Assembly: GCF_963676685.1 (NCBI RefSeq)
Contig: NC_092357.1
Coordinates: forward strand, 3,348,001 to 3,412,000
From: Mytilus edulis
Lineage: Eukaryota
Reading direction: 5' to 3'
Length of the DNA: 64,000 bases
The notes beneath the pieces are model-generated. The model saw only the letters and a program-made list of their open reading frames with translations. It made no database searches and had not been told where the DNA came from. Shown piece by piece: positions 13,671-58,165 of the stretch; within the stretch, counting starts at the first letter, position 1; every line of letters begins with the position of its first letter. The position numbers were made by a program, and so were the translations under genes.

Positions 13671-14388
13671 ATCTTAAGCGTCTGCATGAATATGGACGTT
13701 AACAAACAAGTTGATTTTTTGGCATATCCCACAAGAAATGAATGGTCGGTTCATCTTAAGTGTCTGGACAAATGAGGACGTTAACAAACGAGTTGATCTC
13801 CTGGCTTATCTCACAACAAATGAATGGTCGGTGCATCTTAAGTGTCTGAACGAATGAGGACGTTAACAAACGAGTTGATCTCCTGGCTTATCCCACAACA
13901 AATGAATGATCGGTTCATCTTAAGCGTCTGGACGAATGAGGACGTTAACAAACGAGTTCATCTCCTGGCTTATCTCACAACAAATGAATGGTCGGTTCAT
14001 CTTAAAGGTCTGAACGAATGAGGACGTTAACAAACGAGTTGATCTTCTGGCTTATCCCACAACAAATGAATGGTCGGTTCATCTTAAGCGTCTGGACGAA
14101 TGAGGACGTTAACAAACGAGTTGATCTCCTGGCTTATCCCACAACAAATGAATGGTCGGTTCATCTTAAGCGTCTGGACGAATGAGGACGTTAACAAACG
14201 AGTTGATCTCCTGGCTTATCCCACAACAAATGAATGGTCGGTTCATCTTAAGCGTCTGGACGAATGAGGACGTTAACAAACGAGTTGATCTCCTGGCTTA
14301 TCCCACAACATATGAATGGTCGGTGCATCTTAAGTGTCTGGACAAATGAGGACGTTAACAAACGAGTTGATCTCCTGGCTTATCCCGT
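13671..14388. repeat. 82-bp tandem array, ~8.7 copies, with adjacent terminal hairpin (HINE-like host)
   Basis: Unit tcatcttaagcgtctggacgaatgaggacgttaacaaacgagttgatctcctggcttatcccacaacaaatgaatggtcggt starts at 14079, 14161, 14243; hairpin agacga-ga-tcgtct + aacttgtt at ~14418-14439. Confidence 0.9.
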
Positions 14389-16188: not shown

Positions 16189-16938
16189 GAATGATTCATT
16201 TGGTTCCATAACCATTTCGTACCATTGCCATTTCGTACCTGAAAATAACAATTTCGCACAAGGAACTTGTCATTTCCTTCCATGACCATAGATTATTTCG
16301 TAGCGTAAGAAACTATTTCGTACCATAATGACCAATTTCATACCGTATGGAAAAAATGGCTGTAGCATTTCGTACCAACAAGTATAACTAATTTCAAAAA
16401 TAGCTAACGATGCATTTTGGTATGAAATGTTCAGCATTATTATCTTACATATGCAACGAAATGATATATCTTACATTCTCAAAAATGATACAAAAGGGTA
16501 AACATTATAATTCTTCCATTTGGCACGAAATGGTATAATGTTCCATATGCATAGTACGCAATGGTTTACATTTTAATTCTTTTATATGGTACGAAATGGT
16601 TTATATTTGAATTCTTTTATATGGTACGAAATGGTTTACATTTTAATTCTTTTATATGGTACGCAATGGTTTACATTTTAATTCTTTTATATGGTACGAA
16701 ATGGTTTACATTTTAATTCTTCCATATGGTACGAAATGGTATACATTTTGATTCTTCTATATGGTACGAAATGGTATACATTTTAATTCTGTATATGGTA
16801 CGAAATGTTTTACATTTTAATTCTTCCATATGGTACGAAATGGTATACATTTTAATTCTTCCATATGGAACGAAATAGTATACATTTTAATTCTTCCATA
16901 TGGTACGAAATGGTTTTGGTACGAAATGGCTAAGATTC
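16189..16938. mobile_element. MITE-like element with inverted (ccatttcgtacc/ggtacgaaatgg) motifs and internal 35-bp tandem array (~16520-16915, ~11 copies)
   Basis: Left half repeats ccatttcgtacc, right half its reverse complement; unit atggtttacattttaattcttttatatggtacgaa. Confidence 0.75.
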
Positions 16939-17236
16939 ACTGTACAACAATCCACTTTGATGATGTTTTTACTTCTCGAAACATAGAAATAAAGCATGCT
17001 TTTAGAATTAACAAACATGTAATTGAATTTGAAAAAAAAACAATTACCGGTTTTAGACATGGCAGAATTAATGTTCTAGTATATAATGGAGATACTTTCT
17101 GATTTTATCAAATTTAAAAATTGAATGTTTATCGTTTAATAATTCCCGAAATGTTTGTACTTAAATTGCATGTTAAACAAAACCCCACTACATGTCCTTT
17201 ACTTTATGTACATCTGGTTTTGTTTGGTAGTCGCAT

Positions 17237-17958
17237 GTCAGAGTTTACATTAATCAGCGTGTCTATCCATCCGTCCATGTGTCCGTTAAGGAATCCGTCC
17301 GTCCGTCTGTCAGTGTTTACATTAATCAGTGTCTATCCATCCGTCCATGTGTCTTTTAATGAATCCGCCCGACCGTCTGTCAGTGTTTACATTAATCAGT
17401 GTCTATCCATCCGTCCATGTGTCTGTTAAGGAATCCGTCCGTCCGTCTGTCAGTGTTTACATTAATCAGCGTGTCTATCCGTCCGTCCATGTGTCTGTTA
17501 AGGAATCCGTCCGTCCGTCTGTCAGTGTTTACATTAATCAGTGTCTATCCATCCGTCCATGTGTCTGTTAAGGAATCCGTCCGTCTGTCTGTCAGTGTTT
17601 ACATTAATCAGCGTGTCTATTCATCCGTTCATGTGTCTGTTAAGGAATCCGTCCGTCCGTTTGTCAGTGTTTACATTAATCAGCGTGTCTATCCATCCGT
17701 CCATGTGTCCGTTAAGGAATCCGTCCGTCCGTCTGTCAGTGTTTACATTAATCAGCGTGTCTATCCATCCGTCCATATGTCCGTTAAGGAATCCGTCCGT
17801 CCGTCTGTCAGTGTTTACATTAATCAGCGTGTCTATCCATCCGTCCATGTCTCCGTTAAGGAATCCGTCCGTCCGTCTGTCAGTGTTTACATTAATCAGC
17901 GTGTCTATTCATCCGCCCATGTCTCCGTTAAGGAATCCGTCCGTCCATCTGTCAGTCA
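17237..17958. repeat. 72/70-bp tandem array (~10 copies) containing (GTCC)n microsatellite; HINE-like
   Basis: Unit gtcagtgtttacattaatcag(cg)tgtctatccatccgtccatgtgtccgttaaggaatccgtccgtccgtct; source of spurious ORFs 17121-18119. Confidence 0.9.
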
Positions 17959-20694: not shown

Positions 20695-23547
20695 TTTTTG
20701 TTTTTCTTTGCCTTTTATAATGTTGCCATGGTCCTTGGAGAACACATGCAGTCATATCATTTTGTTTTTCTTTGCCTTTTATAATGTTGTCATGGTCCTT
20801 GGAGAGCACATGCAGTCATATTATTTTGTTTTTCTTTGGCTTTTATAATGTTGCCATGGTCCTTGGAGAGCACATGCAGTCATATTATTTTGTTTTTCGT
20901 TGGCTTTTATAATGTTGCCATGGTCCTTGGAGAGCACATGCAGTCATATTATTTTGTTTTTCTTTGGCTTTTATAATGTTGCCATGGTCCTTGGAGAGCA
21001 CATACAGTCATATAATTTTGTTTTTCTTTGGCTTTTATAATGTTGCCATGGTCCTTGGAGAGAACATGCAGTCATATTATTTTGTTTTTCTTTGGCTTTT
21101 ATAATGTTGCCATGGTCCTTGGAGAGCACATGCAGTCATATTATTTTGCTTTTCTTTGGCTTTTATAATGTTGTCATGGTCCTTGGAGAGCACATGCAGT
21201 CATATTATTTTGTTTTTCTTTGCCTTTTATAATGTTGCCATGGTCCTTGGAGAGCACATGCAGTCATATTATTTTGTTTTTCTTTGGCTTTTATAATGTT
21301 GTCATGGTCCTTGGAGAGCACATGTAGTCATATTATTTTGTTTTTCTTTGGCTTTTATAATGTTGCCATGGTCCTTGGAGAGCACATGCAGTCATATTTT
21401 TTTGTTTTTCGTTGGCTTTTATAATGTTGCCATGGTCCTTGGAATGCACATGCAGTCATATTATTTTGTTTTTCTTTGGCTTTTATAATGTTGCCATGGT
21501 CCTTGGAGAGCACATGCAGTCATATTATTTTGTTTTTCTTTGCCTTTTATAATGTTGTCATGGTCCTTGGAGAGCACATGCAGTCATATTATTTTGTTTT
21601 TCTTTGGCTTTTATAATGTTGCCATGGTCCTTGGAGAGCACATGCAGTCATATTATTTTGTTTTTCGTTGGCTTTTATAATGTTGCCATGGTCCTTGGAG
21701 AGCACATGCAGTCATATTATTTTGTTTTTCTTTGGCTTTTATAATGTTGCCATGGTCCTTGGAGAGCACTTACAGTCATATTATTTTGTTTTTCTTTGGC
21801 CTTTATAATGTTGCCATGGTCCTTGGAGAGCACATGCAGTCATATTATTTTGTTTTTCTTTGACTTTTATAATGTTGCCATGGTCCTTGGAGAGCACATG
21901 CAGTCATATTATTTTGTTTTTCTTTGGCTTTTATAATGTTGCCATGGTCCTTGGAGAGCACATGCAGTCATATTATTTTGTTTTTATTTGGCTTTTATAA
22001 TGTTCTCATGGTCCTTGGAGAGCACATGCAGTCATATTATTTTGTTTTTCTTTGGCTTTTATAATGTTGTCATGGTCCTTGGAGAGCACATGCAGTCATA
22101 TTATTTTGTTTTTCTTTGGCTTTTATAATGTTCTCATGGTCCTTGGAGAGCACATGCAGTCATATTATTTTGGTTTTTTTTGGCTTTTATAATGTTGCCA
22201 TGGTCCTTCGAGAGCACATGCAGTCATATTATTTTGTTTTTCGTTGGCTTTTATAATGTTGCCATGGTTCTTGGAGAGCACATGCAGTCATATTATTTTG
22301 TTTTTCTTTGGCTTTTATAATGTTGCCATGGTCCTTGGAGAGCACATGCAGTCATATTATTTTGTTTTTCGTTGGCTTTTATAATGTTGCCATGGTCCTT
22401 GGAGAGCACATGCAGTCATATTATTTTGTTTTTCTTTGGCTTTTATAATGTTGTCATGGTCCTTGGAGAGCACATGCAGTCATATTATTTTGTTTTTCTT
22501 TGGCTTTTATAATGTTGCCATGGTCCTTGGAGAGCACATGCAGTCATATTATTTTGTTTTTCGTTGGCTTTTATAATGTTGCCATGGTCCTTGGAGAGCA
22601 CATGCAGTCATATTATTTTGTTTTATTTTGGCTTTTATAATGTTGTCATGGTCCTTGGAGAGCACATGCAGTCATATTATTTTGTTTTTCTTTGGCTTTT
22701 ATAATGTTGTCATGGCCCTTGGAGAGCACATGCAGTCATATTATTTTGTTTTTCTTTGGCTTTTATAATGTTGCCATGGTCCTTGGAGAGCACATGCAGT
22801 CATATTATTTTGTTTTTCGTTGGCTTTTATAATGTTGCCATGGTCCTTGGAGAGCACATGCAGTCATATTATTTTGTTTTTTTTTTGGCTTTTATAATGT
22901 TGCCATGGTCCTTGGAGAGCACATGCAGTCATATTATTTTGTTTTTCTTTGGCTTTTATAATGTTCTCATGGTCCTTGGAGAGCACATGCAGTCATATTA
23001 TTTTGTTTTTCTTTGGCTTTTATAATGTTGCCATGGTCCTTGGAGAGCACATGCAGTCATATTATTTTGTTTTTCGTTGGCTTTTATAATGTTGCCATGG
23101 TCCTTGGAGAGCACATGCAGTCATATTATTTTGTTTTTCTTTGGCTTTTATAATGTTGTTATGGTCCTTGGAGAGCACATGCAGTCATATTATTTTGTTT
23201 TTCTTTGACTTTTATAATGTTGCCATGGTCCTTGGAGAGCACATGCAGTCATATTATTTTTGTTTTTCTTTGGCTTTTATAATGTTGCCATGGTCCTTGG
23301 AGAGCACATGCAGTCATATTATTTTGTTTTTCTTTGCCTTTTATAATGTTGCCATGGTCCTTGGAGAGCACATGCAGTCATATGATTTTGTTTTTCTTTG
23401 CCTTTTATAATGTTGCAATGGTCATTGGAGAGCACATGCAGTCATATTATTTTGTTTATAATGTTGCCATATTTTGTTTTTCTTTGCCTTTTATAATGTT
23501 GCCATGATCCTTGGAGAGCACATGCAGTCATATTATTTTGTTTTTAT
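20695..23547. repeat. 64-bp tandem array, ~44 copies, in intron 2 of the membrane-protein gene
   Basis: Unit ttattttgtttttctttggcttttataatgttgccatggtccttggagagcacatgcagtcata (20821, 20885...). Confidence 0.97.
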
Positions 23548-33181: not shown

Positions 33182-34912
33182 TATCATCAGCAGGAATACT
33201 GGTTGTATTGGTGTTTCTTGCTTTGCATGTATCATCAGCAGGAATACTGGTTGTGTCGGTGTTTCTTGCCATGCATGTATCATCAGCAGGAATACTGGTT
33301 GTGTCGGTGTTTCTTACTATGCATGTATCATCAACAGGAATACTGGTTGTGTCGGTGTTTCTTGCTATGCATGTACCATCAGCAGGAATACTGGTTGTGT
33401 CGGTGTTTCTTACTATGCATGTATCATCAGCAGGAATACTGGTTGTGTCGGTGTTTCTTACTATGCATGTATCATCAACAGGAATACTGGTTGTGTCGGT
33501 GTTTCTTACTATGCATGTATCATCAACAGGAATACTGGTTGTGTCGGTGTTTCTTGCTATGCATGTATCATCAGCAGGAATACTGGTTGTGTCGGTGTTT
33601 CTTGCTATGCATGTATCATCAACAGGAATACTGGTTGTGTCGGTGTTTCTTACTATGCATGTATCATCAGCAGGAATACTGGTTGTGTCGGTGTTTCTTA
33701 CTATGCATGTATCATCAGCAGGAATACTGGTTGTGTCGGTGTTTCTTGCTATGCATGTATCATCAGCAGAAATACTGGTTGTGTCGGTGTTTCTTGCTAT
33801 GCATGTATCATCAGCAGAAATACTGGTTGTGTCGGTGTTTCTTACTATGCATGTATCATCAGCAGAAATACTGGTTGTGTCGGTGTTTCTTACTATGCAT
33901 GTATCATCAACAGGAATACTGGTTGTGTCGGTGTTTCTTGCTATGCATGTATCATCAGCAGGAATACTGGTTGTGTCGGTGTTTCTTACTATGCATGTAT
34001 CATCAGCAGAAATACTGGTTATGTCGGTGTATCAACAGCAGGAATACTGGTAGTGTTGGTGTATCATCAGCAGGAATACTGGTTATGTCGGTGTATCAAC
34101 AGCAGGAATACTGGTTGTGTCGGTATATCATCAGCAGGAATACTGGTTGTGTCAGTGTATCATCAGCAGGAATACTGGTTGTGTCGGTGTATCATCAGCA
34201 GGAATACTGGTTGTGTCGGTGTATCATCAGCAGGAATACTGGTTGTGTCGGTGTTTCTTACTATGCATGTATCATCAACAGGAATACTGGTTGTGTGGGT
34301 GTTTCTTGCCATGCATGTATCATCAGCAGGAATACTGGTTGTGTCGGTGTATCATCAGCAGGAATACTGGTTGTGTCGGTGTATCATCAGCAGGAATACT
34401 GGTTGTGTCGGTGTTTCTTACTATGCATGTATCATCAACAGGAATACTGGTTGTGACGGTGTTTCTTGCCATGCATGTATCATCAGCAGGAATACTGGTT
34501 GTGTCGGTGTTTCTCACTATGCATGTATCATCAGCAGGAATACTGGTTGTGTCGGTGTTTCTTACTATGCATGTATCATCAGCAGAAATACTGGTTATGT
34601 CGGTGTATCAACAGCAGGAATACTGGTAGTGTTGGTGTATCATCAGCAGGAATACTGGTTATGTCGGTGTATCAACAGCAGGAATACTGGTTGTGTCGGT
34701 ATATCATCAGCAGGAATACTGGTTGTGTCAGTGTATCATCAGCAGGAATACTGGTTGTGTCGGTGTATCATCAGCAGGAATACTGGTAGTGTTGGTGTAT
34801 CAACAGCAGGAATACTGGTTGTGTTGGTGTATCAACAGCAGGAATACTGGTTGTGTCGGTGTATCATCAGCAGGAATACTGGTTGTGTTGGTGTTTTTTG
34901 CTTTGCATGTAT
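33182..34912. repeat. Compound 48-bp/32-bp tandem array with 576-bp higher-order duplication
   Basis: atcatcagcaggaatactggttgtgtcggtgt(+ttcttactatgcatgt); diagnostic variant block at 34021 recurs at 34597. Confidence 0.95.
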
Positions 34913-35147
34913 TACCAGCCATGGAAATTAAAAATCGATCAAAATAACGCGATCAGATTTGTATGACTCAATTGACTAACTTATCAGACGACTATAACTG
35001 ATATATCGAGTAGAGGTTCTAAAAAGTCTGTGTCGCTCACCGTGTTCGATGTGCTGCAGTGCAAACTCCAATTATACTGGTATACAGAGTCAAGGCTCTA
35101 AAAGAGCATGTGTTGCTCCCCTTGGTCTATGTGCTGCAGTGCATAGT

Positions 35148-35784
35148 AAACACTCTACAGCATTACAGACAAGAGTATAGTTCACGACACAACTCTCTGT
35201 TTTATTGATGGTGACTTGTTTGTACATCTTACTTTACTAAACACTCTACAGCATTAAAGACAAGAGTATAGTTCACCACACAACTCTCTGTTTTATTGAT
35301 GGTGACTTGTTTGTACATCTTACTTTACTAAACACTCTACAGCATTAAAGAAAAGAGTATAGTTCACCACACAACTCTCTGTTTTATTGATGGTGACTTG
35401 TTTGTACATCTTACTTTACTAAACACTCTACAACATTAAAGACAAGAGTATAGTTCACCACACAACTCTCTGTTTTATTGATGGTGACTTGTTTGTACAT
35501 CTTACTTTACTAAACACTCTACAGCATTAAAGACAAGAGTATATTTCACCACACAACTCTCTGTTTTATTGATGATGACTTGTTTGTACATCTTACTTTA
35601 CTAAACACTCTACAGCATTAAAGACAAGAGTATAGTTCACCACACAACTCTCTGTTTTATTGATGGTGACTTGTTGGTACATCTTACTTTACTAAACACT
35701 CTACAACATTAAAGACAAGAGTATAGTTCACCACACAACTCTCTGTTTTATTGATGGTGACTTGTTTGTACATCTTACTTTACT
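35148..35784. repeat. 91-bp tandem array (7 copies) inside HINE-like element
   Basis: Unit starts 35148, 35239, 35330...; preceded by duplicated ggctct-aaa-agagc..tgtgt.gctc.cc terminus (~35013 and ~35091). Confidence 0.9.
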
Positions 35785-37049
35785 AGACATTCTTGCTGTT
35801 TACAGTTATCTTTATGTATTATTCAAAGTGATAACAAAACAATGCAAACGATTCTTAAAAATACCAATTTAGGGGCAACAAACACTATATTTTTGTGATT
35901 CAACATTTTACTGTTTTTGTTATTTTTATTTAGAGCTTTTATTGGCACTACATTTTTGCTCGTGATTATTCAAAATAATCCCGTTTATTTATCATCTTCA
36001 AAAACTATAACAAAACATATATACTCATTAAAGAATGGTCAATTAATCATAATGAAATGATTTGTTTTCAATTCAGGACAAGATATGTCAGCCAAGCATT
36101 GCTCCTTCAATAATCATTATTGCATAAATGCTAATGTTAGGATAGATATACCTCAAAATGAGAACAACCATAAAACATCACATCAAGCCAAAGAGATTGT
36201 GATGTAATAATAACATCTTAAAGGAAAACCAAGTGTATCTCCATTTTCCTTTTTTTATTGGCTTTGTCTATTTACCACTGTTGGGCGGCCATCCTTTATT
36301 TACGAAATCATAAATACCCACAAGCCAGAAATTAAAGAAACACCAATATTTATTTCAAAGTGTTTATTATAAAGCAAATGGATATATATGATATTAATAC
36401 AAGATATATTTATATAATAAGTCAAATAATATAATATTACAGGTAATGAGTTATAGTTCTTTATATTTCGACAGAAAAAAAAGGCACACAACTGTCTAAA
36501 CAATTATACAAAAACCTTATCATGAGGTCCAGGGGTTGATCTTGCCATTTTGAAAGGGAGTCCTAACCCAGGACAAAAAGGGGGGTGTGGTCCAACTACA
36601 TGTCCCCACTCAAATGCTTTGATCGTCCAAAAAAGGTGGGTTCCAACACCCGGAACCAACCCCCTCGATCCGCTTCTGAGGTCTGTTACACAATGATAAT
36701 ACAAGTACTATTCGATGACTGATTAACATTCATTTAACTATTAATAGAATTTACGCTATCCAGCTACTAAATTTCTGCAATGGCTCAATTTGCTGTATTA
36801 TGATATGATGTTTAAAAATGTGTTTTTCAATTTTAGATATAAAAAATGTAAATCACAAATTAAAAACCAATTCTTCAGAGAACAATTGAAGGTCTTTCCA
36901 CCTCGACAATTAGAATGAAATTTAGAAAAAAAAATTAGAAAGGGTCAATCCTTGTTGATGTAATTTGGTACCTTAACTGATATAGAAAAAAAAGATTAAT
37001 AGGTATATACAGAATATTTAATTGTTTTATAATGAACAAAAACAAATTT

Positions 37050-43610: not shown

Positions 43611-44196
43611 CTGAGAAGAAAATGAAATTAAGTTGTATTGCAAGATAACTATTTTTTACATCATTTCGGTACATACGTATAAACATATATACAGAAAACT
43701 ATTCTTTTTACACTCAAACGGATGGGAATAAAATAAAATAACGATCGTCAAATTAAAAAAAACTTGTTTGGTATTAGCATATATCAGTATATAGACCGTT
43801 TGAAATTAAGAATTAATCCTTTCCGTATTTTAATTCATTTTTGGGGAAAACATATTAAACTTTTCATTTTTAAATTTGTATCTATTTAACAGGCATGACA
43901 GATAAAGTCAAACTTAAAGAAAACCATGTCTAGCATTTCAGCCAAACAAATGTGTTTACATTGATCATCGTCATTATCATTAAGTTAGTGTTTCCTTTTG
44001 GTTAGCTGACAAACATATCATTGTTTGTCTGGCAAGACAGTTTCACTCGGAGTGTAATGTTTAATATTATATAATTCTCAACAATAAGCAAGTTTGTCGG
44101 TGTAAAATTTAAATGTCTTATAGAACTATGAGTGTATTTATATAAGTGTGTTGCCTGTAGTTCACACTAATCGAAACTTTGAATAACATGTACTAC

Positions 44197-45441
44197 CTTT
44201 TCTGCAATCCATGACATGATTGTGTGTATGCTATGTTCAATGCCATGCGAAGGACATATCCACACTTGGTCTGTGTCAGTAAGATCGTTAACTTGCAGGA
44301 AGCATGGGTTAGCTGGTGAGTTACAACATATTCTTGTCACAAAAGATGTATCATTGATTTGAGTCTGATCGCTACTAGTTCTAATATACAGATCACTTAT
44401 TTTCTCTAAGGCTGATGTTAGACATTCACAGATGCTGGAAGCTACATCTCTCGCTATAAGGGTGTTTGAAGTGGTATGAACAAGACGAGAAATGATTATC
44501 TCATCTTCACAGGCAATATACATATCCAAACATGGATCAATGGTGAACACTCCCGACCTATGGAACAACATGTCCTTGTTGGACTGCCCGTATGTTTTCA
44601 CTGCCCAGACATAAAGGCAGTAGCTTATAAATCTGAAGGATAATGCAGGAGGTATCATAAATGATGATGTTTGAAAAGCTAGGGCAATACTCCTGTGCGT
44701 GAAGCCAGCTGACTGCAGGTATCCAGAATCATCTTTAGCTCGTACCATACTAGCAACATAGTAAAAATCAGCAGGGATACGCATTCGGTTAGAATTGTAT
44801 CTCATCGGTTCAACCAATATATCCAGATGGGTCATAACATTTAATAGATAATCTTTGTCTTGGTAAAATTTTACATATTTCTTTCCCTTCCAAACGCTTT
44901 CTATTGCTTGTTTTGATACCACCCCTGTCTTGCCCATTGCATCCCATATTTCTTCTCTTTTCTTGTCGCCTTTACAAAATTGCCTATCTGTAACAATTGA
45001 TTTAAATGCTTCGATCAGAAGAGTGGGAGACAGAATAATTCGGTCGTCCAATTTATGTTCATCGAAGTATAATAACTTGCCAATTGAATGTTGAAATTTC
45101 AGAAACACCTTCAACTCAACTTCTGACAACGGTCTAATAGGTTGCAATGAGTTTATTTTCTCTAGATGCTCTAGTGTAATAAGTTGGATGTTGCGTTTGA
45201 TCAACGATGCAAATTCTAACTCTAACGGGATAAAGCATTTTGGAAGGGGTTTACCCCATGTTGGTTGCCTCTCTGATTCCCTGACGATAGCGTCCTTTAT
45301 CTTCGCCATTTCAGGGTCATGTTTGTCTTTAGCATTTACAAATATTTTATCACTGATAACCAGTTGTTGCATTAATGGATCTTCGTGGAACATCTTGTAG
45401 ATTTCTTCAAATATGTCATTTCGTCTTTTTTCAACTTCATT
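44197..45441 (-). CDS. Roco exon: end of ROC (G5-like FVNAK) and COR domain
   Basis: 1245-nt phase 0-0 exon; WGKPLPKCFIPLE, FLKFQHSIGKLLYF, IILSP..LIEAFKSIVT are COR-A hallmarks. Confidence 0.92.
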
Positions 45442-46491
45442 CTAAGCATACAATACAATATGTTCTAACCTTTATTTATAACTTTATTATCATAAAACTA
45501 TTCATTGAAGGTATGTATGTTTCGTATATATATAAAAGTTCCATTATAGCAAAATTATAAAGTTATATTTTGATTTAAACGTTATGCTTTTTTAAAGGAC
45601 ACCTACATGGCAAAGCCTTACATTGACAATTTGCAATACGATAAGTAATGTAAAAAAAACATGTATCCTGCAATTGTGTGTCTCCTTGTACTTTAACAAC
45701 CAAACAGATATCGCTTGCTTGTATATGTATACTTTACAGATACCGCTTAAAATGTCCGTCAACTGCCCGACTAGCTTGTGTATTGTTGTTGAGTGTTGTA
45801 TTAACCTCTATAGCCTCAGAATATGTGCATTACAGTTGCATTCAATGACGTATTGCTTCCCCCTCTTGTGTTAGTGTAACTCTAAATCAATTTACGTTTT
45901 GTTTGTTTTTCTAGCAGATCAGTTATTCGAATTTTCTGACAAACATGAGCAGCAGAACTCAATGATCTACGGCGCCAATCTAAACTTGGATATGTATATG
46001 TAATTAACCATAAAACAATGACAATACATCATGTGCTAGTTATGTTACGTTAGCTCATAGCTCTGAAGTGAAGGACAAGTAATATACTTTTGTTTTTAAT
46101 ATTATTTGTTTTTGTTGTTGAAATTATTTGTTACGTTAAAATAAATAATTATTAACTTTAGCGCGTAATATTTTTGCACATTCAAGATTTTTTTTCTGTG
46201 TACTACGAAAATAAATTCTATAAAAACGTGGGTTTTTGTTTTTGTTTCTAAGCAAACACATGGAAAACAGTAATAGCAGGATAAAGACAATATCTGTTTA
46301 GTACTTTGGTTTGTTTACTGAAATCGCGTTACTTCTGTTTCTTAGCCTCGTACAATTACAGGTGATATTTAAAGACCCTAAACAGTTATTGTCTTTTGAT
46401 TCTTCCTATTTTTATTAGGTTAATAAACATTATCAAAGAGTCCATCGTTTCAATCGTAAGGAATCGTCTACATCATTCTTACAGCGTTTAC

Positions 46492-46589
46492 CTGATCTTT
46501 GTGCGTTAAAACAATCAGAATTTTAGGAAATCCCTGGAAACTTCCTTTACAGTATGTTACAATGGTGTTGACCCAGAATAGGAGATAAT
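46492..46589 (-). CDS. Roco exon: ROC G4 region (DYLLFWVNTI...PKILIVLTHKDQ)
   Basis: ttacag| phase 1; CAG|gtaaac (alternative in-frame donor 46483 GCT|gtaaga); THKD = G4; absent from ORF track. Confidence 0.9.
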
Positions 46590-46909
46590 CTGTAATGTTT
46601 AAAAACAAATAAACCCGAAAATACACAAGGAGAAAAGTATTTAAGTCATTTGAATGTAAACGTTCTCAGAAATATACTTTGAATTATTTTATTTATTATT
46701 ATTACTTTTACTGTTTAGTCTGTTTTTTGTTATATCTATTTTACGTGACTCTGCATTTATGTATGCCGTCATACTTCGAACGACAAAATTATTTTATGTT
46801 TACCTGTGGGAATTTCAACCGCGCAATTTTACACCAGTACTGAAAACCTTCCATCCTTTACGGGTAGATTTTACATAGATAAATAAAGCCGTATAAGATA
46901 AGCAAAATG

Positions 46910-47292
46910 AGAATGTTAAATTTAATGTATGCCTTTTTGTGCTTCTTCGTTACATTTGTTGTTTTTATAGTGATTAAGATAATAACACAATATTGACTGC
47001 TGTACCTCTATTTTTGACATTTTAACTCTTTGAGTATGTTTGTTTTGTTCATGCATCGTTGACAATGTAATGGAATTTGATGCGACTGTCATACAAGTGA
47101 GAGGTTTAGCTATCTATACAACCAGGTTCAACCCACCATTTTCTACATTAGAAAATGCCTGTACCAAGTCAGGAATATGACAGTTGTTATCCATTCGTTT
47201 GATGCGTTTGGACTTTTGAGTTTGCCTTTTGATTTTGGACTTTCCTTTTTGAATTTTCCTCGGAGTTCAGTATTTTTGTGTTTTTACTTTTT
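46910..47292 (+). repeat. Interspersed repeat, near-identical to 57682-57958
   Basis: Shared actctttgagtatgtttgttttgttcatgcatcgttgacaatgtaatggaatttgatgcgactgtc...gttttt. Confidence 0.85.
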
Positions 47293-49086
47293 AATACTAT
47301 TGTTATGATACCACTTTTGATTTTCCCCTAAAAGTCTTTTTAAATTTGCACTTTTGAAAAAAATTGTGCAAACTTTTGTCCTTGATTCAAATACAAAAAT
47401 ACTTGGCATGAGCAACGTTACATGAGAAAATATCTGAAAAAGTCAAATTTCCATGTTCCATTTTTCACCAGCATTTTCTGTTTTATTAAGGCACCTTTAT
47501 AAAAAATTTAAGTTTCAGTATTAACTAAAGTATATAATGCACCAACTATTGCCAATTAAACACTATTTCTTATATTTCTTCTAATAAGTTTTTTATAATT
47601 TAAATGTTCAACCCCCAAGCGTCCTTCATCCCCAAACAAACGCATGTTGTCCGGTGTTGTTTTCTGACAACTTAATCATTCAAAAAATGTCTAAGTTAAG
47701 TAAACAGGCTTTCGATTGTTTCACAAATATGACATATAATATAGAAAATTTGTCCCTTACTGGTCTGATTTTATAATAACTAATGCATGTGATAAAATTT
47801 TGCTATGTAAGGGTCTTGTAAATTGTGTCACAAAGGGGTACTTTTCCTCCTGTCACTACTTTTTTTTCACCTGTGGGTACGTTTGAAAGAACAGCAATTG
47901 ATTTCTTCATATGTATAGGTGAAAGGCAGCCTGATAAAAAGTAACATCACAGCCTTACTCAGCAACAGGAAGGAAGTTTAAGTCAATTTCAGTGATGAAT
48001 CACAAAGTTAATCTACTATACGCCAACCATTTCATTCAATATAAATTATGATCATCATATTAAAAAAATCTCAACATAATATGCACTATATTGAATTAAA
48101 AGACAGGTATTTTTTACTTGAGAATTGTTTATTAACTAGGCAGATTTGTCGTTTTGCAAATACAGTTTAAAAAGATAAATGACATTACTTCCTGATATCT
48201 TCCAAATGTGACCAATTTGAAATGTTGTATTTAACTACATAAAGCAATTGTTTTGAAAAATAATTCCTTCCTATTACCAACTCTGTCCTGTTATTTGTCC
48301 TGTTACACAGCATGCTTCCATGTTACCGACATATCGGACTACATTTTAGTATATTGCTTAACCTTCTGTATTGAAAATGTTAAAATAAATAATTGGCATT
48401 TGAAATAATATAGTAGGATTTACTAGATATAGTATCTTTAACTTATTATTTATTCCCATTATAAACTATCTTAAATTGATTCACTGTGGTAACAGGAAAG
48501 AGCTGGAATTTGTTTGTACATTTTTTAAGATTGCAATTATTATCAAATTGAACAATTGTTTGAATTACAGAAAAATATTCACATATCATCGATGTACGTT
48601 CTTCCATTTGTGCTATTAAAATAACGATTCTAAAGACATTTCTTGATGTTTTTTCCTATTGCCAGAAATTAAACATTTTCAGATATTGATTCATATCCCG
48701 TTCAGTACTACAGACAGAAATAACATATCATTACACATTTTCTCTTTTTTATTTGTATAGAAGGTCAAGTAACCATTTTACCTCAAATTTGCAAAATACA
48801 AAATAATGGTGCGTTGAATTTCCTAAGATGTTTGTTTATGACCCAGAATTATCCTACTGCAATGAAATGTCATTATCATGAGCATATTTTTTCAACCCTT
48901 ATTTCTATGCAACTTTGATTTGGTGATATCAAAAATTACTTGACTGCTAATCTCAACAACAATTGCCAAATTGTGTTGATGTTTAATTTAATAAGGCCTT
49001 TTTAAACATAAAAAAAAAAATATAGATATATAGGTTAAAATTGTTTCGTAACACGGTCTTTAAAACTAATGTCAGTTTAGTAATAC

Positions 49087-51569
49087 CTCTTGAGGTTTTA
49101 TGTCCACTTTTTCCTGGGAGGTATTGTTCATAAAGACATGGATCATCAAGTTTTCTACTTCCATCCAATACAATTATGTAAATAGCTCTGTACGTTAAAA
49201 ATGTTTGATGAGTTGAATAGAAAACATCCTGGCCACCAAAATCCCAGATAATTATAGGTACTTTCTTTCTGATGTGAAGCTTCTTTTTACCAACTTTAGA
49301 AGACTTCTCTAAGAAGCTTTCCTTTGTGATTGACACTTTAACTTCTTTGACTCGTTTAGTAATGCCAAACACACGTTTCAGACGTGCTATAATTCCAGGT
49401 TTAGTAACAGTTTTAATATGCAAATCACCAGTGAAACCTGACTTCAGAGAAGCATCAAGAGAATCTTCCATTGGTTTGTATTCATCAAACGAAGGTTCAT
49501 GTATTTGTCTGAATTTTGTAACATCTGAAGTTTGGTTTTCAGTTGCATAATCTAGGACGACTAGATCGTTCCTTGTGTCTGAACTTTCCCCATCAAATTC
49601 AGATATAACTGATTGCCTTTCTAAACTACGGAGTACGCCTTGTACATCTGACTCATATGTGTCATCGTTGTCTACTCTTTCTAATTTCTGTCCTGCAACA
49701 TGACCTGGTTGTTTCTTTTCCATACTAATTGCCAAACTATTAGCACAACCAGGTACGGTTTGAAACTGAGGTTCGGGCAGTGTTTTGGATTTCACAGCTT
49801 CTGTCATTAAGCATTCAGTGGATAACGTTGCATCGCACGATTTTGATTCATTCGATTTATGCTTCAGCCATTCTTCGTTGGCGGACATTGATGCCTCCTC
49901 TGTAACATCTGATATATTTGGACTGGTTGGTGTAGTATCTGCTGAAGGAACATTTGATGTTGTGTTGTTGTATCTGCTGAAGGAACATTTTGATGTTGTG
50001 TTGTTGTGTCTGCTGAAGGAACATTTTGATGTTGTGTTGTTGTGTCTGCTGAAGGAACATTTTGATGTTGTGTTGTTGTGTCTGCTGAAGGAACATTTTG
50101 ATGTTGTGTTGTTGTGTCTGCTGAAGGAACATTTTGATGTTGTGTTGTAGTATCTGCTGAAGGAACATTTTGATGTTGTGTTGTAGTATCTGCTGAAGGA
50201 ACATTTTGATGTTGTGTTGTAGTATCTGCTGAAGGAACATTTTGATGTTGTGTTGTTGTGTCTGCTGAAGGAACATTTTGATGTTGTGTTGTTGTGTCTA
50301 CTGAAGGAACATTTTGATGTTGTGTTGTTGTATCTGCTGAAGGAACATTTTGATGTTGTGTTGTTGTGTCTGCTGAAGGAACATTTTGATGTTGTGTTGT
50401 TGTGTCTGCTGAAGGAACATTTTGATGTTGTGTTGTTGTGTCTGCTGAGGGAACATTTTGATGTTGTGTTGTAGTATCTGCTGAAGGAACATTTTGATGT
50501 TGTGTTGTAGTATCTGCTGAAGGAACATTTTGATGTTGTGTTGTAGTATCTGCTGAAGGAACATTTTGATGTTGTGTTGTTGTGTCTGCTGAAGGAACAT
50601 TTTGATGTTGTGTTGTTGTGTCTGCTGAAGGAACATTTTGATGTTGTGTTGTTGTGTTTGCTGAAGGAACATTTTGATGTTGTGTTGTTGTGTCTACTGA
50701 AGGAACATTTTGATGTTGTGTTGTTGTGTCTGCTGAAGGAACATTTTGATGTTGTGTTGTTGTGTCTGCTGAAGGAACATTTTGATGTTGTGTTGTAGTA
50801 TCTGCTGAAGGAACATTTTGATGTTGTGTTGTTGTGTCTGCTGAAGGAACATTTTGATGTTGTGTTGTTGTGTCTGCTGAAGGAACATTTTGATGTTGTG
50901 TTGTTGTGTCTGCTGAAGGAACAGTTTGATGTTGTGTTGTTGTGTCTGATGAAGGAACATTTTGATGTTGTGTTGTTGTGTCTGCTGAAGGAACATTTTG
51001 ATGTTGTGTTGTAGTATATGCTGAAGGAACATTTTGATGTTGTGTTGTAGTATCTGCTGAAGGAACATTTTGATGTTGTGTTGTAGTATCTGCTGAAGGA
51101 ACATTTTGATGTTGTGTTGTTGTGTCTGATGAAGAAACATTTTGATGTTGTGTTGTTGTGTCTGCTGAAGGAACATTTGGATGTTGTGTTGTTGTGTCTG
51201 CTGAAGGAACAGTTTGATGTTGTGTTGTTGTGTCTGCTGAAGGAACAGTTTGATGTTGTGTTGTTGTGTCTGATGAAGGAACATTTTGATGTTGTGTTGT
51301 TGTGTCTGCTGAAGGAACATTTTGATGTTGTGTTGTAGTATCTGCTGAAGGAACATTTTGATGTTGTGTTGTAGTATCTGCTGAAGGAACATTTTGATGT
51401 TGTGTTGTAGTATCTGCTGAAGGAACATTTTGATGTTGTGTTGTTGTGTCTGATGAAGGAACATTTTGATGTTGTGTTGTTGTGTCTGCTGAAGGAACAT
51501 TTGGATGTTGTGTTGTTGTGTCTGCTCGTAAAAGGGATCTGCAAACTGTGATTTCTTCCAGGGAAAAAT
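49087..51569 (-). CDS. Roco giant exon: intra-ROC insertion (36-bp repeat + low-complexity region) then G3 WDFGGQ; contains -1 frameshift at 49953-49955
   Basis: cttatatag| phase 1 gives DFSLEEITVCRSLLRADTTTQHPNVPS...; exits ...IIIWDFGGQDVFYSTHQTFLTYRAIYIIVLD...TSR G|gtatta. Confidence 0.88.
49936..51527 (-). repeat. Coding 36-bp minisatellite, ~44 copies, encoding ADTTTQHQNVPS
   Basis: Unit GCAGACACAACAACACAACATCAAAATGTTCCTTCA; commonest variants GAC/GAT, ACA/ACT, CCT/CCC are synonymous only in this frame. Confidence 0.95.
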
Positions 51570-52377
51570 CTATATAAGAAATAAACTAAAACTATTGATT
51601 AGATGTTTTGGCAAATTCCAATATAAAAGTACAATTTTTTACAAAACAAAAATGCAAAACTTTATCTTGTTATCTATGATGAGTTTCTTTGTTATTCATA
51701 TGTAAGTATTTTCTTACTTGTTAAAATGTTTTTGTTTATTTTAAACTTGTTAATTGATTTTTTAGCTTCTGTAAAATAAAGTGTTGTAGTATTGAAAAGT
51801 CATCATTAGCCTAAGGAGAGACATGTGATACAATTATATATCCATGTCCTTGATAACATATATTGTACATATAATCACAATTTAAAAACGTACATATATA
51901 TTGGATAATAACTCTTACATTTAAGTAATACTTTTCTTTATAAACCCTGAAATATATTATGTCGTCAATATTGTGATTTTTGTCAACTTTAAATTGAAAG
52001 GTGAAAGACGAATTATGGTTTGTTTTTATTGCAATTACCAATTGGGTATAGCTGAAGTGGAATATATATGATGGAATATAAATCAGACATGTGGAAATGT
52101 GTCTAATTAGCACAAACTAAATTAAAAGTTGGACAAATACGTTGTACAAAATAAACAAATGTTGGTATGTATTTGGACTGGACAAATAAAATGCAGTGAT
52201 TTTTAGGACTTATATTTTGTTTACAATTTGATAAACAATTCTATTGAAACTTTAATAGTTTTTAACTGAAACTTTATTTCAACCTGATTTTAACTTCCGT
52301 AAACTGCACACTGTAATACATGAAAGTCTGGAAAATATGAAAGAGGATAACTTCGGATTTCAAATGTATGGCTTTGA

Positions 52378-52752
52378 GCGTTCCTGATGAAAGTAAATCC
52401 AGAAAAGCGCTTCGGTCGCAAGAAATTATTAAACGTGTTGGTATCATTTTTTTTACATCGATACCTGTGCTGGTGGATTATCAGTCCCCGAGGGTATCAT
52501 CAGCTCAGTAGTCAGTGCTTCGGTAGTGACATGAATTAACAAACTTTAGTAAAATTTTCCGTTAATAAATTTTGAAATTATTATGAAACTAAGGTTTAAA
52601 CTCCCTCAGGCAAAGTTGGTTTTATATGAATTTGGCTATTTATTTTAGGTATTTTTGACATATAGCTGTTCAACGATTTTAGTTACTCATCTATCTCGGA
52701 TTTAAAATATTTGGCTTGAGCTTTCCTGATGAAGGTAAATCCAGAAAAACGC
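52378..52752 (+). mobile_element. Retrozyme-like monomer (family 2): 342-nt unit bounded by two hammerhead motifs
   Basis: CTGATGA at 52384 and 52726; first: gcgttc-CTGATGA-aagtaaatcca-GAAA-agcgct-TC-ggtcgc; flanking sequence tcggattt.aaat...acgtgttg also duplicated. Confidence 0.75.
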
Positions 52753-55700
52753 AAGCAATTATTACACGTGTTGAATTTATTTGTTTACAGCAAATTATTT
52801 ATAAAGCTGTATTAAAAGATGTCATGTGTAATGGGTAATAACCAGTGACACAATGTTCATGTATATATATAGTGAACGTTTGTGGTTTATTAAATATATG
52901 AAGTGTGAAGTTATTATATTATATATTAAAAAAATCTTTGGCAATGTAATCATTAATTTAACCAGATAATTTAAGACGCTTTTAACCAATCATATTCCTA
53001 GAAGATGGTTTAATAATGAATACACAAGACGGATATCTCATCTATACAAACTCAACAGTGGCTCTCAAAATTTAAAACCACATGGCCAACCTCATTTAAA
53101 CTTATTAAGATACATCCTAAGAAAACAATGAAATCAGGACCATATAGCCGATTGCTTCAATTGTAAAACATAAATAATTCATTTGTTATTAATCAGATAG
53201 TGTTGAATAGAGCTGTCGCAGAACTCACGTATCGAGGACGTATCCGTATATTACGGAATTTATTTAAAGTATTTGTGAATATGCTAAAATGAGTAGTACA
53301 TGTATTCGTAAAACCAATAGTCCTTAAATGAAGGGGTGAAGTTATGTAAAAATAATACGTGTCACTTGATAAGTGTAGTAACCATTTTAATGTGTATCAT
53401 CGAACTTTTTTCACGATTAAAGCGATGTATAAAAAAATCATTAATAGTCCATTTGAATTCTATATTTTCTAAAATGAAATATCAAAAGTCAGCTTTTTAA
53501 ACTATAGTGCTTAATTAATTTTTGTTCGTCCGGTATGGGATCTTCAGTATGACAAGGTAAATAAACTGTCATTGAGAAAACGAGTTGACTTAAAACTGGT
53601 CCAATGTTTATTCCTAATTCTAAACAGTATACATTAAATATGAATGGAGATCATCATAATCAAGGGTATTCCATTTGTATTTTTCTGATAATAAACGATT
53701 GACTGTCGTTGTCAGATTTTAAGAATGCATTCACGAAACAGACATAATTAAATTAAATAAATGTATAACTTCAATATTAATAGACAAAATCTCCTTGAAA
53801 AAAAAATCATAGTTCGTATGACAATCAAATAAAAACATTTTATCAAATTCAACAACATGTTTCATATATGAAAATCGGGATTTTGTATTGCTTATTTTGA
53901 AGATTGATCGAATACAAGTGGATCATAAACATTATGAACTGGAAACAACATTAACAATCCCTTTTACATAAGAGGCGTAAGAAAGAAGAAACCATAGGGA
54001 CATTCCTAAATCGATGTTAATCGGAATTGTACTTTGTCTAGTATAACTCCAGTTTTTGTGTGATAGTTGCTTATTGCGCTATGAGTTAGGGAGCTTCCAT
54101 TGATTTTTATGGGGGGGAACAGGGTTTGTTAGCTTAGATGCAATTTGATAAAAGACAGGTCATGAGTATTGAGTAACAAAAATGCACCTCAGCAAAGAAA
54201 AAGGGCATGCTAACAATATATACATGTAAGTGAAAATTATTAACTATTTGACAAAAGCCACGACCTAATAGAGGGAAAATCAAAAAAGGGAGAACAGCGA
54301 TTAAAACTAAAACCAAATGCCGTACACATTTTTCATCATAGCCCCCATAGACATCACATGGCAGCTCCCTCAAATTTAAAGAATATGGTGAATGTTTATA
54401 TAAAATAGACCGAGGTTGTTATTTTCACTGATGGTATTTCTCATATTTGTACATATGTATCGTCTGTCTACCTAAAATAAATGACCACTGTAATCGACAA
54501 ATCATCAATTAAGATTTTCAGTCCATGATTAATGTTCATTAAAAAGATAACATAGTAATCATGTTAAAATCTGAATCAAAATGAGTATATATCACTTCCT
54601 CGATATTTGAAATAAAAATTGAAAAAGTTTCCTTTTTTGAACAGCTTTTAAAAAGCGCTAGCAATAAAGTCAGAAGAAAGTACCGGTATATATGTGCATT
54701 TATTAACGGACATTTAAAATTCAGAAAATATCGCTTAATTTTGTTTGTTTAATGTCGTGCCAAATATCTCATTTTAGAGTTTGCAATTTTAACAAAACAT
54801 TTTATTCTCACTAAATTGGTAAGCAAGAAAATTTCACAGCCTGGAGGTACATGTAATTACAATACTGAAAATATCTATCAGAGAGATTTTTTTTTAACGT
54901 ATGCAATTTAATGATACAAAAGGAAAAGCTCGTAAAGTTTTTTTTAGCGTAAAAAGGGGTACCTCTATCTTAAAGGTCACATTCATGATTAATATAATTA
55001 GTATGCAATAATCTTATTCTAATAATTGTTCAAATTAAGTAAAATGCAACACTGTGTTTTTTTTACATTCAAACACACCTAACCTGTTATGATGACGTAT
55101 AGTTAAAAATATATTTTACCCATGTATTTAAGTTTTCATGAATTGTACAATCTAACTGTTGATGTAAACACAATGATTTTAAAAATATAAATACTGAAAT
55201 TTGAAGCGAGATTATATCTTTTTGTTACTGTTTTAAACATTTCATAAACCAAACAGGCGACCCAAAATTTTTAGAAAAGGTGTACCTGAGTGAATTTCTT
55301 AAGATTGATAGCAATGATAGGACATGTTGTTTAAATACTGTTACCTTGGCAGATATGCAAATGCTTTTACAGAACAATGTCTGTCCTGTCTTTTTTCTAC
55401 TCTAATCAGTTCTGCCTTTTTATTTATTTCATCCTGAATTCTTTTACGTAAACTTTCATGATGCGGTTTTTGGCAAAGTGACTTTTACTCCTTTTTTTAC
55501 TCAAGAGTCTTTTTCTGTCACCTAATCCATTTTCATTCATATCGGCCCTGCTTTTTTTAGTTTATATTGCCCTTACTAAATTTCGTGCCTAGCCCCTCCC
55601 CCCCCACCCTAAATAAATAAAAATGGACGCTAGATGTATTTCGTGAAAGTAATATTTGAAAAGGCAATTGATTCTTTATTCAATATATGTGAATGTTTTT

Positions 55701-56858
55701 ATAATACATCAATTAAATGTCAAACTGTTTGTCTGGGCAATTTTTTTTTAAAGTTTAATAAAAGACAGCTATTCTGAAAAAAAAATTATGAAGATATTTC
55801 GTAATAGGGCAGACAGGGAATTTTCAGAAGTTCAAGGCGAATAGATACTTTGAATACTACAATGTATAGTAGTGTAACAGATAATTTCTTCTTAAACAAG
55901 GATGAAGGAATGAACGTCCCACATGAAAAGATGATTTGTAAGTCAAACATGTTTTTTTTCAATAATTAGTCATATAAAATGGAATTCGTTAAGAACAGGA
56001 CGTTCAACAATTGAACCAAATATATAATCAAACACGCCTACCTTGTTATGATGACTCATCACAAAAGTTATTTCACTTGACCCATATCTTTTGCTTTCTC
56101 TTAATAGGAAATGTTTATGTCAATATTTAAAAATATGGCTTTAAAATATGAAAATAATGGAATTTAAAGCGTTATGATATTCTTTTAGTTTCTGTATTAA
56201 ATCTACCCGAACACGCTTTGACTATAACAGGTATGCTTGACTTTACTCTCGAATCTCGAAGTTATATTTTGTTTTCATTAATGTCTGTTAAATCAATCTT
56301 CAGTATTCCAATGTTTTTTACATTAGTTAGGCATATTGAAAAAAAAAACAAAGCACACATGACATGATACCCCTTTTTGATTTAATTTATAAGTTGATAG
56401 AGTCACCCGGTCAGAAAAAAAGATACTCATTTTAACTGTCTCGCACGTAAATGAATACTTTGATACATATACGTATCTAAATACTGCAGTTCTGCAACAC
56501 TTAAAAGGAAATCAAAGACGGAACCATAAGTATTGATATATCATGGGTGAGAGTATTTATTGCAACTGAATAATCACATTTCTTTCGTCATAAAAAACAG
56601 AACTGCTTTAAACAAATTGATATAGTTAATTGAAATCTTTTAAACAAAATTAAATAAATTGAAAATGAAAATATATACTTTGCTGTTTTCATTTATTTTG
56701 ATCCATCATAAAGCAAGTTAACATTGTAAGCATTGTCTACCAGATGAACAAGGTAAAGTTATATTTGAATCATATCTAATATTGTATGAATATTATATTT
56801 ATTACCGCCAAGACTCAAATTACTGATAATATACCATACAGATCTTCTTAAAGCTTAA

Positions 56859-56950
56859 GGGGCATCGATGGCCGAGTTGTATAAGTATTAACTACTGTAA
56901 TAAATGGTCTGTCAACACTGAGGTTGTGAGTTCTAACGTCGCCCGTGCCG
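56859..56950 (+). mobile_element. Decayed tRNA-derived SINE head
   Basis: ggggcatcgaTGGCCGAGTTG...gaggttgtgAGTTCTAACG A/B-box-like motifs. Confidence 0.5.
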
Positions 56951-57030
56951 TCGCCGTAATTTTTCACAAGACAAATTAGTACTGTCTACCCAGCACCGAA
57001 TTAATGGCTTTTGGGTTATCTAGGTCTTAC

Positions 57031-57288
57031 CTTGCTGTCCTCCAAGCCATTCCTTCGTTTCACGATCAAAGTAGGAAAGGCCATTGTATAATTCTATTCC
57101 ATCAGTTGACTTTCTGAATCTAGTTGGTTGTTTACCGACAAGATGTCTGGCAATAGTTGTCTTCCCTGTACCTTGTTCTCCAGCTAACATTACTCTTGAC
57201 TCAAAATGAAGAAAACTTTCTTCGACCAATAAACTTGAAAAAATGTGGGCTGAATTTTTATCCAATTTTTTCACTTCAATTGGAAAAC
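57031..57288 (-). CDS. Roco exon: ROC G1 (GEQGTGKT) and G2 (STDGI)
   Basis: ttttcag| phase 1 ... CAAG|gtaaga phase 1; RVMLAGEQGTGKTTIARHLVGK...KSTDGIE. Confidence 0.92.
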
Positions 57289-57681
57289 CTGAAAATTCGA
57301 CTAATCAATGTAATATTCAAATTCTACTGATACGTGAAGTACGATGGTTTATCGTTTAGCATTAGTTAACCATTATACCGAATGCGTTGTTCTTGGTAAT
57401 ATTTTTTTGTACGTTTGTTCTTCTTTCCTGCGTTTTACATATATTGGAAACATGTCCATCTCCCTAAACATATCACTATAAAATCACTTAATTTCAAAAC
57501 ATGTCAAGGTGCTAAAGTGGTACAAAACTTTTTTTTTATAAGAACGCCCATTCGGATCAACTATAAAAAAAAAACAGCCAACTCTGAATGGGTCGAGTCT
57601 CCCGATCTCGTCAAAATTCTCGAAATGTTGCAAAACACAAAGACATACAAAACAAAATGCTCAAGCTGAAGGACAATTCAT

Positions 57682-58165
57682 GACATTTTTACTCTTTGAG
57701 TATGTTTGTTTTGTTCATGCATCGTTGACAATGTAATGGAATTTGATGCGACTGTCATACAAGTGAGAGGTTTAGCTAGCTATAAAACCAGGTTCAATCC
57801 ACCATTTTCTACATTAGAAAATGCCTGTACCAAGTCAGGAATATGACAGTTGTTATCCATTCGTTTGATGTGTTTGGACTTTTGATTTTGCCTTTTGATT
57901 TTAGATTTTCCTTTTTTAATTTTCCTCGGAGTTCAGTATTTTTGTGTTTTTACTTTTTATCTGTAATACACTACACACGAGAGGTTTAGTGCTATAAAAC
58001 CAGGTTCAATCCACTATAATTTTCTTCATTTTAAAATTGCTGTACCAAGTCAGGATTATGACAGTTGTTGTCTATTCGTCTGATGTGTATGTTTTATTAT
58101 TTAATTTTGACATTTGATTAGGGACTTTCCGTTTTAAATTGTCTTCGGAGTTGTGGTTTTACATT
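57682..58165 (+). repeat. Two tandem copies of the gagaggtttag...caagtcagga repeat module
   Basis: 57682-57958 matches 47017-47292; second partial copy 57975-58165. Confidence 0.8.

Follow-up and report, generated by a model that had tools for sequence, protein, structure and literature searches.

The window analyzed here, a stretch of 64,000 nucleotides (nt) from the mussel Mytilus edulis (G000:C14:3348001-3412000; assembly of 1.37 Gb), harbors on its minus strand a gene for a Roco GTPase, in which the Roc domain is divided between G2 and G3, i.e., between switch I and switch II, by a long insert containing a tandem array of 36-nt units. The gene probably represents one member of an M. edulis family of more than 140 ANK-Roc-COR paralogues, in which the interswitch insert is a built-in component and the array is part of an exon, the copy in the window being frameshifted. 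In the architecture proposed for the family, ANK, Roc and COR would be followed by death-domain-like C-terminal modules, and the insert would be located at the beta2-beta3 turn.

The insert across the paralogue family

Paralogues of the two exons concerned are numerous in the M. edulis genome, with at least 149 matches for the exon encoding G1 and G2 (exon A) and at least 140 for the exon encoding the insert and G3 (exon B). For frame analysis, 23 paralogous loci were retrieved. At every locus possessing the WDFGGQ motif of G3, the frame holding this motif stays open for 120-790 codons upstream, reaching at most loci a conserved start, namely DFSLEEIT in the close subfamily or NALDVVY in the distant ones. 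The coding frame of the linker was free of stop codons in 20/20 loci, compared to 2-54 stops in the other two frames and means of 2.6-39.5 in shuffled sequences, and the open reading frame (ORF) through the G domain was continuous in the paralogues L011-L024. Annotated proteins of M. edulis, M. trossulus, M. galloprovincialis and others (four Mytilus species) join the exons exactly at ...GGQQ/DFSLEEIT... and ...KTSR/DYL..., the slash marking the splice junction. The motif DFSLEEIT on the N-terminal flank of the insert is kept in paralogues down to ~50% identity. Furthermore, the array itself is read in frame in several members: in L011 it lies within a 794-amino acid (aa) open frame stretching between the conserved start of the exon and G3, and it is likewise in frame in L012 and in the annotated coding sequences of P0003, P0004, and P0087.

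The variable linker, ~170 aa in the window translation with 22% S+T and 19% D+E, showed a median ratio of nonsynonymous to synonymous substitution (omega) of 0.78, its N:S values being not different from neutral (p 0.2-1), compared to an omega of 0.18 for the insert's final ~60 aa together with the G3 region. Since open frames are kept and omega amounts to 0.18 as opposed to a neutral-like 0.78, the frame and the flanks are under constraint, but the linker sequence is not. Positive selection on the linker was considered on account of omega values >1 in some pairs and was not supported, as N:S was indistinguishable from neutral. In the family, the insert would begin with a conserved helix (DFSLEEIT...), continue with a disordered linker that is acidic, rich in Ser/Thr, and fast-evolving, and end with a conserved, basic strand-helix-strand-helix element leading into beta3 and G3.

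Distant Roc subfamilies of M. edulis (L025-L027 and L033, from clusters on C11, C12, C7, and C5) have the same intron after beta2 and a shorter insert, consisting of the NALDVVY helix, a Ser/Thr/Glu-rich linker of ~50-60 aa and then MTKEEIRKKMEKVLKSGKYKMKVGRLIFWDFGGQ; their exons are merely ~0.7-1 kb apart. Two M. galloprovincialis proteins carry additional parts: P0022 has Pfam matches to a C-type lectin and a transposase-type helix-turn-helix domain, and in P0002 the Roc half is followed by a tail rich in Ser/Thr/Pro. Fusion or faulty joining of gene models may account for these parts.

Structures were predicted by means of AlphaFold2 (AF2) for the paralogues P0028 and P0008. The P0028 model (536 aa; alignment A1, 60 sequences) reached a mean predicted local distance difference test value (pLDDT) of 56.4 and was disordered at residues 72-313, and the P0008 model (1191 aa; alignment A2, 81 sequences) reached a mean pLDDT of 75.7 and a predicted template modeling score (pTM) of 0.69, with disorder at 233-421. 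In both models, disorder (pLDDT ~30) is limited to the linker of ~190-240 residues. Outside this part, P0028 represents a G domain, its Roc fold being rebuilt from both halves around the disordered loop of 190-240 aa, which is the outcome of the structure prediction that the initial annotation had called for. The insert of P0028 contributes a helix (57-73) on its N-terminal side and the elements E317-322, H325-335, E344-349, and H350-362 on its C-terminal side, followed by beta3 (370-378). In P0008, the N-flank helix is located at 219-228, residues 233-421 form the sole long disordered stretch, ANK, Roc, and COR are predicted confidently, and the C-terminus comprises two helical bundles (1001-1084 and 1101-1186).

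Comparison of the P0028 model (1-528) with the Roc domain of LRRK2 (1338-1522) yielded a VIA Z of 15.2 and a root-mean-square deviation of 2.7 A for 166 aligned residues at 25% identity, and the top 16 rows of the Foldseek search with P0028 were all LRRK2 (E 2e-4). In the phmmer alignment, G1 corresponds to residues 6-24 and G3 to residues 54-95 of 2zej, leaving ~320 extra residues in between. A disordered interswitch loop on an intact GTPase, as envisaged in the initial annotation, is thus upheld for the family by junctions, open frames, AF2 models, and the Z of 15.2, but the window copy is frameshifted as assembled.

The insert was also encountered outside this gene. A phmmer search with P0028 as query against 1.84 billion representatives gave 1442 matches at the threshold of E<=1e-3. 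The spacing between the P-loop Lys and the G3 Asp, being 48 aa in LRRK2, had a median of 303 aa in 58 Mytilus proteins; among 69 more distant representatives the median was 169 aa, and 65 of them featured at least 100 aa. Distant members, among them those named for Saccostrea echinata, Ylistrum balloti, Argopecten irradians, and Branchiostoma belcheri, have the extra low-complexity stretch past G2/beta2 and ahead of WDF[GA]GQ. Judged from these sequences, the interswitch insert is a hallmark of the family, which numbers hundreds of genes in Mytilus and has relatives among oysters, scallops, and amphioxus. The full-text literature, the coverage of which was limited, yielded no account of Roco proteins with an insert between the switches, so that this silence is only weak evidence of novelty.

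Layout of the gene in the window

The window has a G+C content of 32.5% and zero N runs. Exons of the Roco gene were located by tblastn with the annotated paralogue proteins P0007 and P0008, and their boundaries were refined from splice signals in the sequence. The following features were assigned:

57031-57288, minus strand: exon A with beta1, G1, alpha1, G2, and beta2; acceptor ttttcag/G, donor CAAG/gtaaga
57181-57158, minus strand: G1 GEQGTGKT, from the exon A translation
57109-57095, minus strand: G2 STDGI, from the exon A translation
51570-57030, minus strand: intron between exons A and B, gtaaga ... ttatttcttatatag; same junction in annotated paralogue proteins
51569-49087, minus strand: exon B with insert, array, and G3; acceptor tatatag/A
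51526-51569, minus strand: N-terminal flank of the insert at the start of exon B, (D)FSLEEITVCRSLLR, predicted helix
49942-51525, minus strand: predicted coding minisatellite of 44 units x 36 nt reading ADTTTQHQNVPS, from Tandem Repeats Finder (TRF) and a unit table
49953-49955, minus strand: frameshift site, A-run of 3 instead of 4 in unit 44, from DNA alignment and tblastn
49864-49866, minus strand: premature TGA of the assembled allele in the ADTT frame, reached after the deletion
49430-49941, minus strand: degenerate last unit (ADTTPTSPNISD) and variable linker of ~170 aa in the G3 frame, predicted disordered
49247-49429, minus strand: conserved basic C-terminal flank (GDLHIKTVTKPGIIARLKRVFGITKRVKEVKVSITKESFLEKSSKVGKKKLHIRKKVPIII), predicted strand-helix-strand-helix leading into beta3
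49087-49246, minus strand: G3 WDFGGQ (49246-49229), switch II, beta4, and end of exon B; donor AGAG/gtatta, phase 1
46492-46589, minus strand: exon C with alpha3-beta5 and G4 THKD (46506-46495), from tblastn and sequence
44197-45441, minus strand: exon D with the end of Roc (G5-like NAK) and COR; Pfam COR-A E 9e-10; 93% identical to P0007
42584-42309, minus strand: exon E, C-terminal helical module, from tblastn
41212-40898, minus strand: exon F, C-terminal helical module, from tblastn

According to sequence and translation, exon A ends in phase 1 after ...WLGGQQ; in the tblastn comparison it is 98% identical to residues 1-54 of P0007, and the exons other than the disrupted one are intact and 85-98% identical to this protein. 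All five G motifs (GEQGTGKT, STDGI, WDFGGQ, THKD, and NAK) are present in the gene. The initial annotation had placed G1 and G2 in exon 57031-57288, which splice signals and translation confirmed, and G3 at 49246 with THKD and NAK further on, which was found to be correct as well, THKD residing in exon C and NAK in the COR exon. Its array of ~44 units between G2 and G3 agrees with the 44.4 copies of period 36 detected by TRF. The ~230 aa of low-complexity sequence described there have to be divided: ~170 aa do represent a variable, acidic, Ser/Thr-rich linker, but 61 aa are conserved, basic, and predicted to be structured.

Pfam Roc matched exon A at profile positions 1-38 with 21.1 bits, staying under the cut-off of 27 because the domain is split over two exons, and exon B at positions 31-91 with 35.9 bits (E 1e-8). 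COR-A was detected with 39 bits (cut-off 35.3) on the ORF 44167-45393, directly C-terminal of Roc. The profile check on Roc, COR, and Death suggested at the outset therefore succeeded for Roc and COR-A on the window exons, but Pfam Death was not recovered on exons E and F, where Dark_CARD reached E 0.12 at best. Family annotations name such modules death domains, and some members are titled 'Death domain-containing'. No Rfam family, hammerhead included, was found at gathering score on either strand of window positions 46000-58000, including 52378-52752.

The 36-nt array and its frame in this copy

TRF delimited the array to 49931-51526 (period 36, 96% matches, 0 indels), and a higher-order pattern of ~9 units is apparent. 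Its frame is fixed by the conserved acceptor tatatag/A (exon start 51569) together with phase 1 of exon A, giving (D)FSLEEITVCRSLLR followed, according to the unit table, by 43 full units of ADTTTQHQNVPS and then unit 44. The period is a multiple of 3, and the array is open in the frame set by the flanking exon. Each 36-nt unit additionally holds ttccttcag/cag, a pyrimidine-rich NAGNAG acceptor in phase with exon A. Two other readings of the array were rejected: a generic satellite or a piece of a transposon, as the 36-nt unit is confined to the homologous site in three C14 paralogues, and, for the family, an intron, given the conservation of upstream acceptor, helix, and frame.

Unit 44 carries CATCAAATG in place of the CATCAAAATG found in all other units, with an A-run at 49955-49953. 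In the DNA alignment with four paralogues, this deletion of 1 nt (A4 to A3) appeared as a gap in the window sequence alone, and tblastn of paralogue proteins against the window showed a frame change from -2 to -1 across it. Because unit 44 has one A fewer, the ADTT frame proceeds past the deletion as MFLQQILHQ... and hits the TGA at 49866-49864, 5' of G3; the downstream ADTTPTSPNISDVTEE... through G3 is read in a frame other than ADTT. The frame of G1/G2 and the array is consequently separated from that of G3-G5, and no continuous G-domain open frame exists in the window copy. The split of ~790 aa between G2 and G3 claimed in the initial annotation agrees in length, with ~800 residues from the G2 Thr to the G3 Asp if the deletion is read through, but the frame across it is broken. 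Transcriptional slippage at the A-run was considered but not retained, the run being just 3-4 bases in length.

The number of units differs considerably among gene copies, as revealed by the comparison of the G2-G3 insert among paralogues that had been recommended:

~2 units of 12 aa: L013, L014, P0005, and P0007 (M. edulis); P0008 (M. trossulus); P0002 (M. galloprovincialis)
~6 units of 12 aa: L012 = P0004 (M. edulis); P0087 (M. galloprovincialis)
~16 units of 12 aa: P0003 (M. galloprovincialis)
~41 units of 12 aa: L011 (M. edulis; C14:1.98 Mb)
~45 units of 12 aa: window copy

In all of these copies but the window, DFSLEEIT is in frame with G3. Copy-number differences were seen between paralogues and between species. 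With regard to synonymous divergence (dS) of the linker, the window is nearest to L014 and L012, not to L011, so that the unit number changes fast. Other repeats were observed in frame at the same linker site, namely a 13-aa unit (SSKPNISDVTEVA) x ~35 in L015 (C14:1097500-1102700, plus strand), a ~28-aa unit x 4 in L019 (C14:2926400-2930000, minus strand), and a ~31-aa unit x 3 in P0001 (M. trossulus).

Elsewhere in the window, minisatellites are located at 20696-23457 (64 nt x 43), 13671-14386 (82 nt x 8.7), 16502-16916 (35 nt x 10), 17236-17956 (72 nt x 10), and 35147-35793 (91 nt x 7). A compound array on the plus strand (33182-34894) consists of 48-nt (17.7 copies) and 32-nt (28 copies) units; all three plus-strand frames are open there, with ORFs of 603, 417, and 281 aa, and it may be a second coding minisatellite or merely a stop-free unit. 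As tandem arrays are common in this stretch, the array in the Roco gene is unremarkable as such.

Barring an assembly error or a bypass by splicing, the balance tilts slightly towards the assembled copy being a null allele or a young pseudogene. That the gene is intact is possible but less probable; the missing A at 49953-49955 would then reflect a mistake in the assembly or consensus, or would be restricted to the haplotype that was sequenced, and the normal product would contain an insert of ~800 aa. This would be in line with the undamaged state of the remaining exons (85-98% identical to P0007), with a single-base lesion within a homopolymer bordering a hard-to-assemble, near-perfect array of 1.6 kb, and with the ~41 units of L011, which are compatible with an open gene. 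However, 4 A's are short for a homopolymer error, truncated members are numerous in the family, and the assembly contains no second haplotype copy with which the deletion could be compared. It is improbable that the array is skipped, with exon A being joined to ttccttcag/CAG of the last unit (exon start 49941 or 49938) and the product reading ...GGQQ-A-DTTPTSPNISDV... in the G3 frame with a short insert and without the DFSLEEIT helix. Although every unit offers such an acceptor and, on the sequence, only the post-deletion one regains the G3 frame, all paralogues down to ~50% identity retain tatatag/A along with the DFSLEEIT helix, all annotated proteins use them, and L011, L012, and P0003 hold the array in frame.

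The least credible proposal by far takes as the true frame that of an 853-aa ORF (48983-51544), which extends the G3 frame back through the array as TTSKCSFSRHNN repeats and is not the frame of exon A. This ORF is uninterrupted and continuous with G3, an acceptor caatag/TT (exon start 51591) would yield its frame in phase 1, and the TTSKCSFSRHNN translation scores on Pfam PF23348 (RDM3_C beta-solenoid) with E 2.8e-25. But the tract of caatag/TT is purine-rich and poor, the conserved DFSLEEIT start would be lost, no paralogue or database protein uses the frame, and its openness is trivial for a stop-free unit; the Pfam score (E 3e-25) is most likely a periodic, compositional match.

Several observations weigh against the family-wide insert with an exonic array and a frameshifted window copy. 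The annotated proteins used for junctions and coding sequences are predictions, the records for truncated family proteins are genome-annotation products only and no transcripts, and both AF2 models represent paralogues and not the window gene. Among candidates of 470-1490 aa, no protein spans the window's own exon B. Moreover, every minus-strand frame is nearly open across the array, owing to the lack of stop codons in the unit. Ten types of variant occur within the array; read in the ADTT frame, 3 of them, including the two most frequent, are synonymous and 7 are non-synonymous. They are weak evidence for selection on this frame and no proof on their own.

Provided that this favored explanation holds, the 44 x 36-nt array would have arisen through recent in-frame expansion of the 12-aa unit ADTTTQHQNVPS, of which ~2 copies were present in the ancestral linker, and loop length would change through replication slippage or unequal exchange. 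The canonical mRNA of the assembled copy would encode G1/G2 and the repeat only, with the stop 5' of G3. An mRNA with a stop far upstream of its last exon junctions is, as a general rule, a target of nonsense-mediated decay; the mRNA of the assembled allele would be such a target, because its stop lies far 5' of the last exon junctions. The beta2-beta3 turn would be far enough from the nucleotide pocket for the G fold to tolerate any loop length, the conserved flanks would clamp the loop at its base, and the loop itself would probably serve as a flexible, modifiable, or interaction-prone appendage, the sequence of which is free to drift. An intramolecular contact between the acidic linker (D+E 19%) and the strongly basic flank beside it is possible, as a matter of speculation.

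Relation to known systems and implications

The family resembles the Roc-COR module of known Roco proteins (LRRK2, LRRK1, and the Roco proteins of C. tepidum and M. barkeri) in GxxxxGKT, the G2 Thr, DFGGQ, THKD, and NAK as well as in its Pfam Roc and COR-A matches. Unlike LRRK2-type Roco proteins, however, it possesses 100-800 extra residues between beta2 and beta3, with a G1-G3 distance of 303 (Mytilus median) versus 48, and it features neither leucine-rich repeats nor a kinase, but N-terminal ANK repeats and two helical modules after COR. In DAPK1, the order is ANK, Roc, COR, and death domain. The mussel family, with its annotations 'Death domain-containing protein', shares this order of ANK, Roc-COR, and a putative C-terminal death fold, but lacks the kinase and the calmodulin-binding region and ends in two modules instead of one.

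Natural insertions into G domains include the helical domain of G-alpha, the I-box of SRP/FtsY, the Rho insert helix, and the G' subdomain of EF-G, all placed in a surface loop with the fold being kept. In contrast to the mussel insert, these are located at G1-G2, the G2 region, beta5-alpha4, or G4-G5, and they are folded, of fixed length, and non-repetitive. Coding minisatellites (variable number tandem repeats, VNTRs), such as the tandem repeats of mucins, are similar in their in-frame Ser/Thr/Pro-rich unit, near-identical copies, higher-order pattern, and copy number varying between gene copies. However, the mussel array resides in a loop of a cytosolic enzyme domain and not in an extracellular stalk as in mucin-type VNTRs, and its variation is known between copies and species.

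The insertion site at the switch I-switch II turn, away from the nucleotide and effector surfaces, is shared with the engineered Cdc42Lov and photo-inhibitable Rac1. In Cdc42Lov, LOV2 was placed between residues 47 and 48 of Cdc42, and the G domain folds; disorder of the insert is allosterically coupled and down-regulates effector binding (PMC10083549). The engineered insert is a folded photosensor of 140 aa, whereas the mussel insert is natural, mostly disordered, 100-800 aa long, and equipped with conserved flanks of its own. The entry 5hzh was among the Foldseek matches of the P0028 model.

Molluscs are known to possess Roco-TIR and Roco-death proteins (PMC9334734). It is conceivable, though doubtful, that the insert acts as a regulatory module of a greatly expanded, immune-receptor-like Roco family, in which phosphorylation, cleavage, or binding of the loop, together with loop length as determined by fast-changing coding minisatellites, would be relayed via the flanks to the switches and the death-fold modules, providing a paralogue- or allele-specific threshold or bait. 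As a functional module, the insert would be a natural counterpart of the engineered 'extrinsic disorder' switches, by analogy.

The results also bear on genome annotation. Split Roc halves score poorly, so that only the C-terminal half is reported for full-length proteins, and repeat-bearing copies are easily mis-framed, as illustrated by the 853-aa ORF in the wrong frame. Should the predicted proteins be real, 100-800 disordered residues are present in hundreds of invertebrate Roco GTPases at the switch I-switch II turn, the same turn that protein engineers picked for the allosteric control of small GTPases. The family would then offer a natural system to ask how much can be inserted into the Ras-like fold at this position and whether the switch is regulated by the loop.

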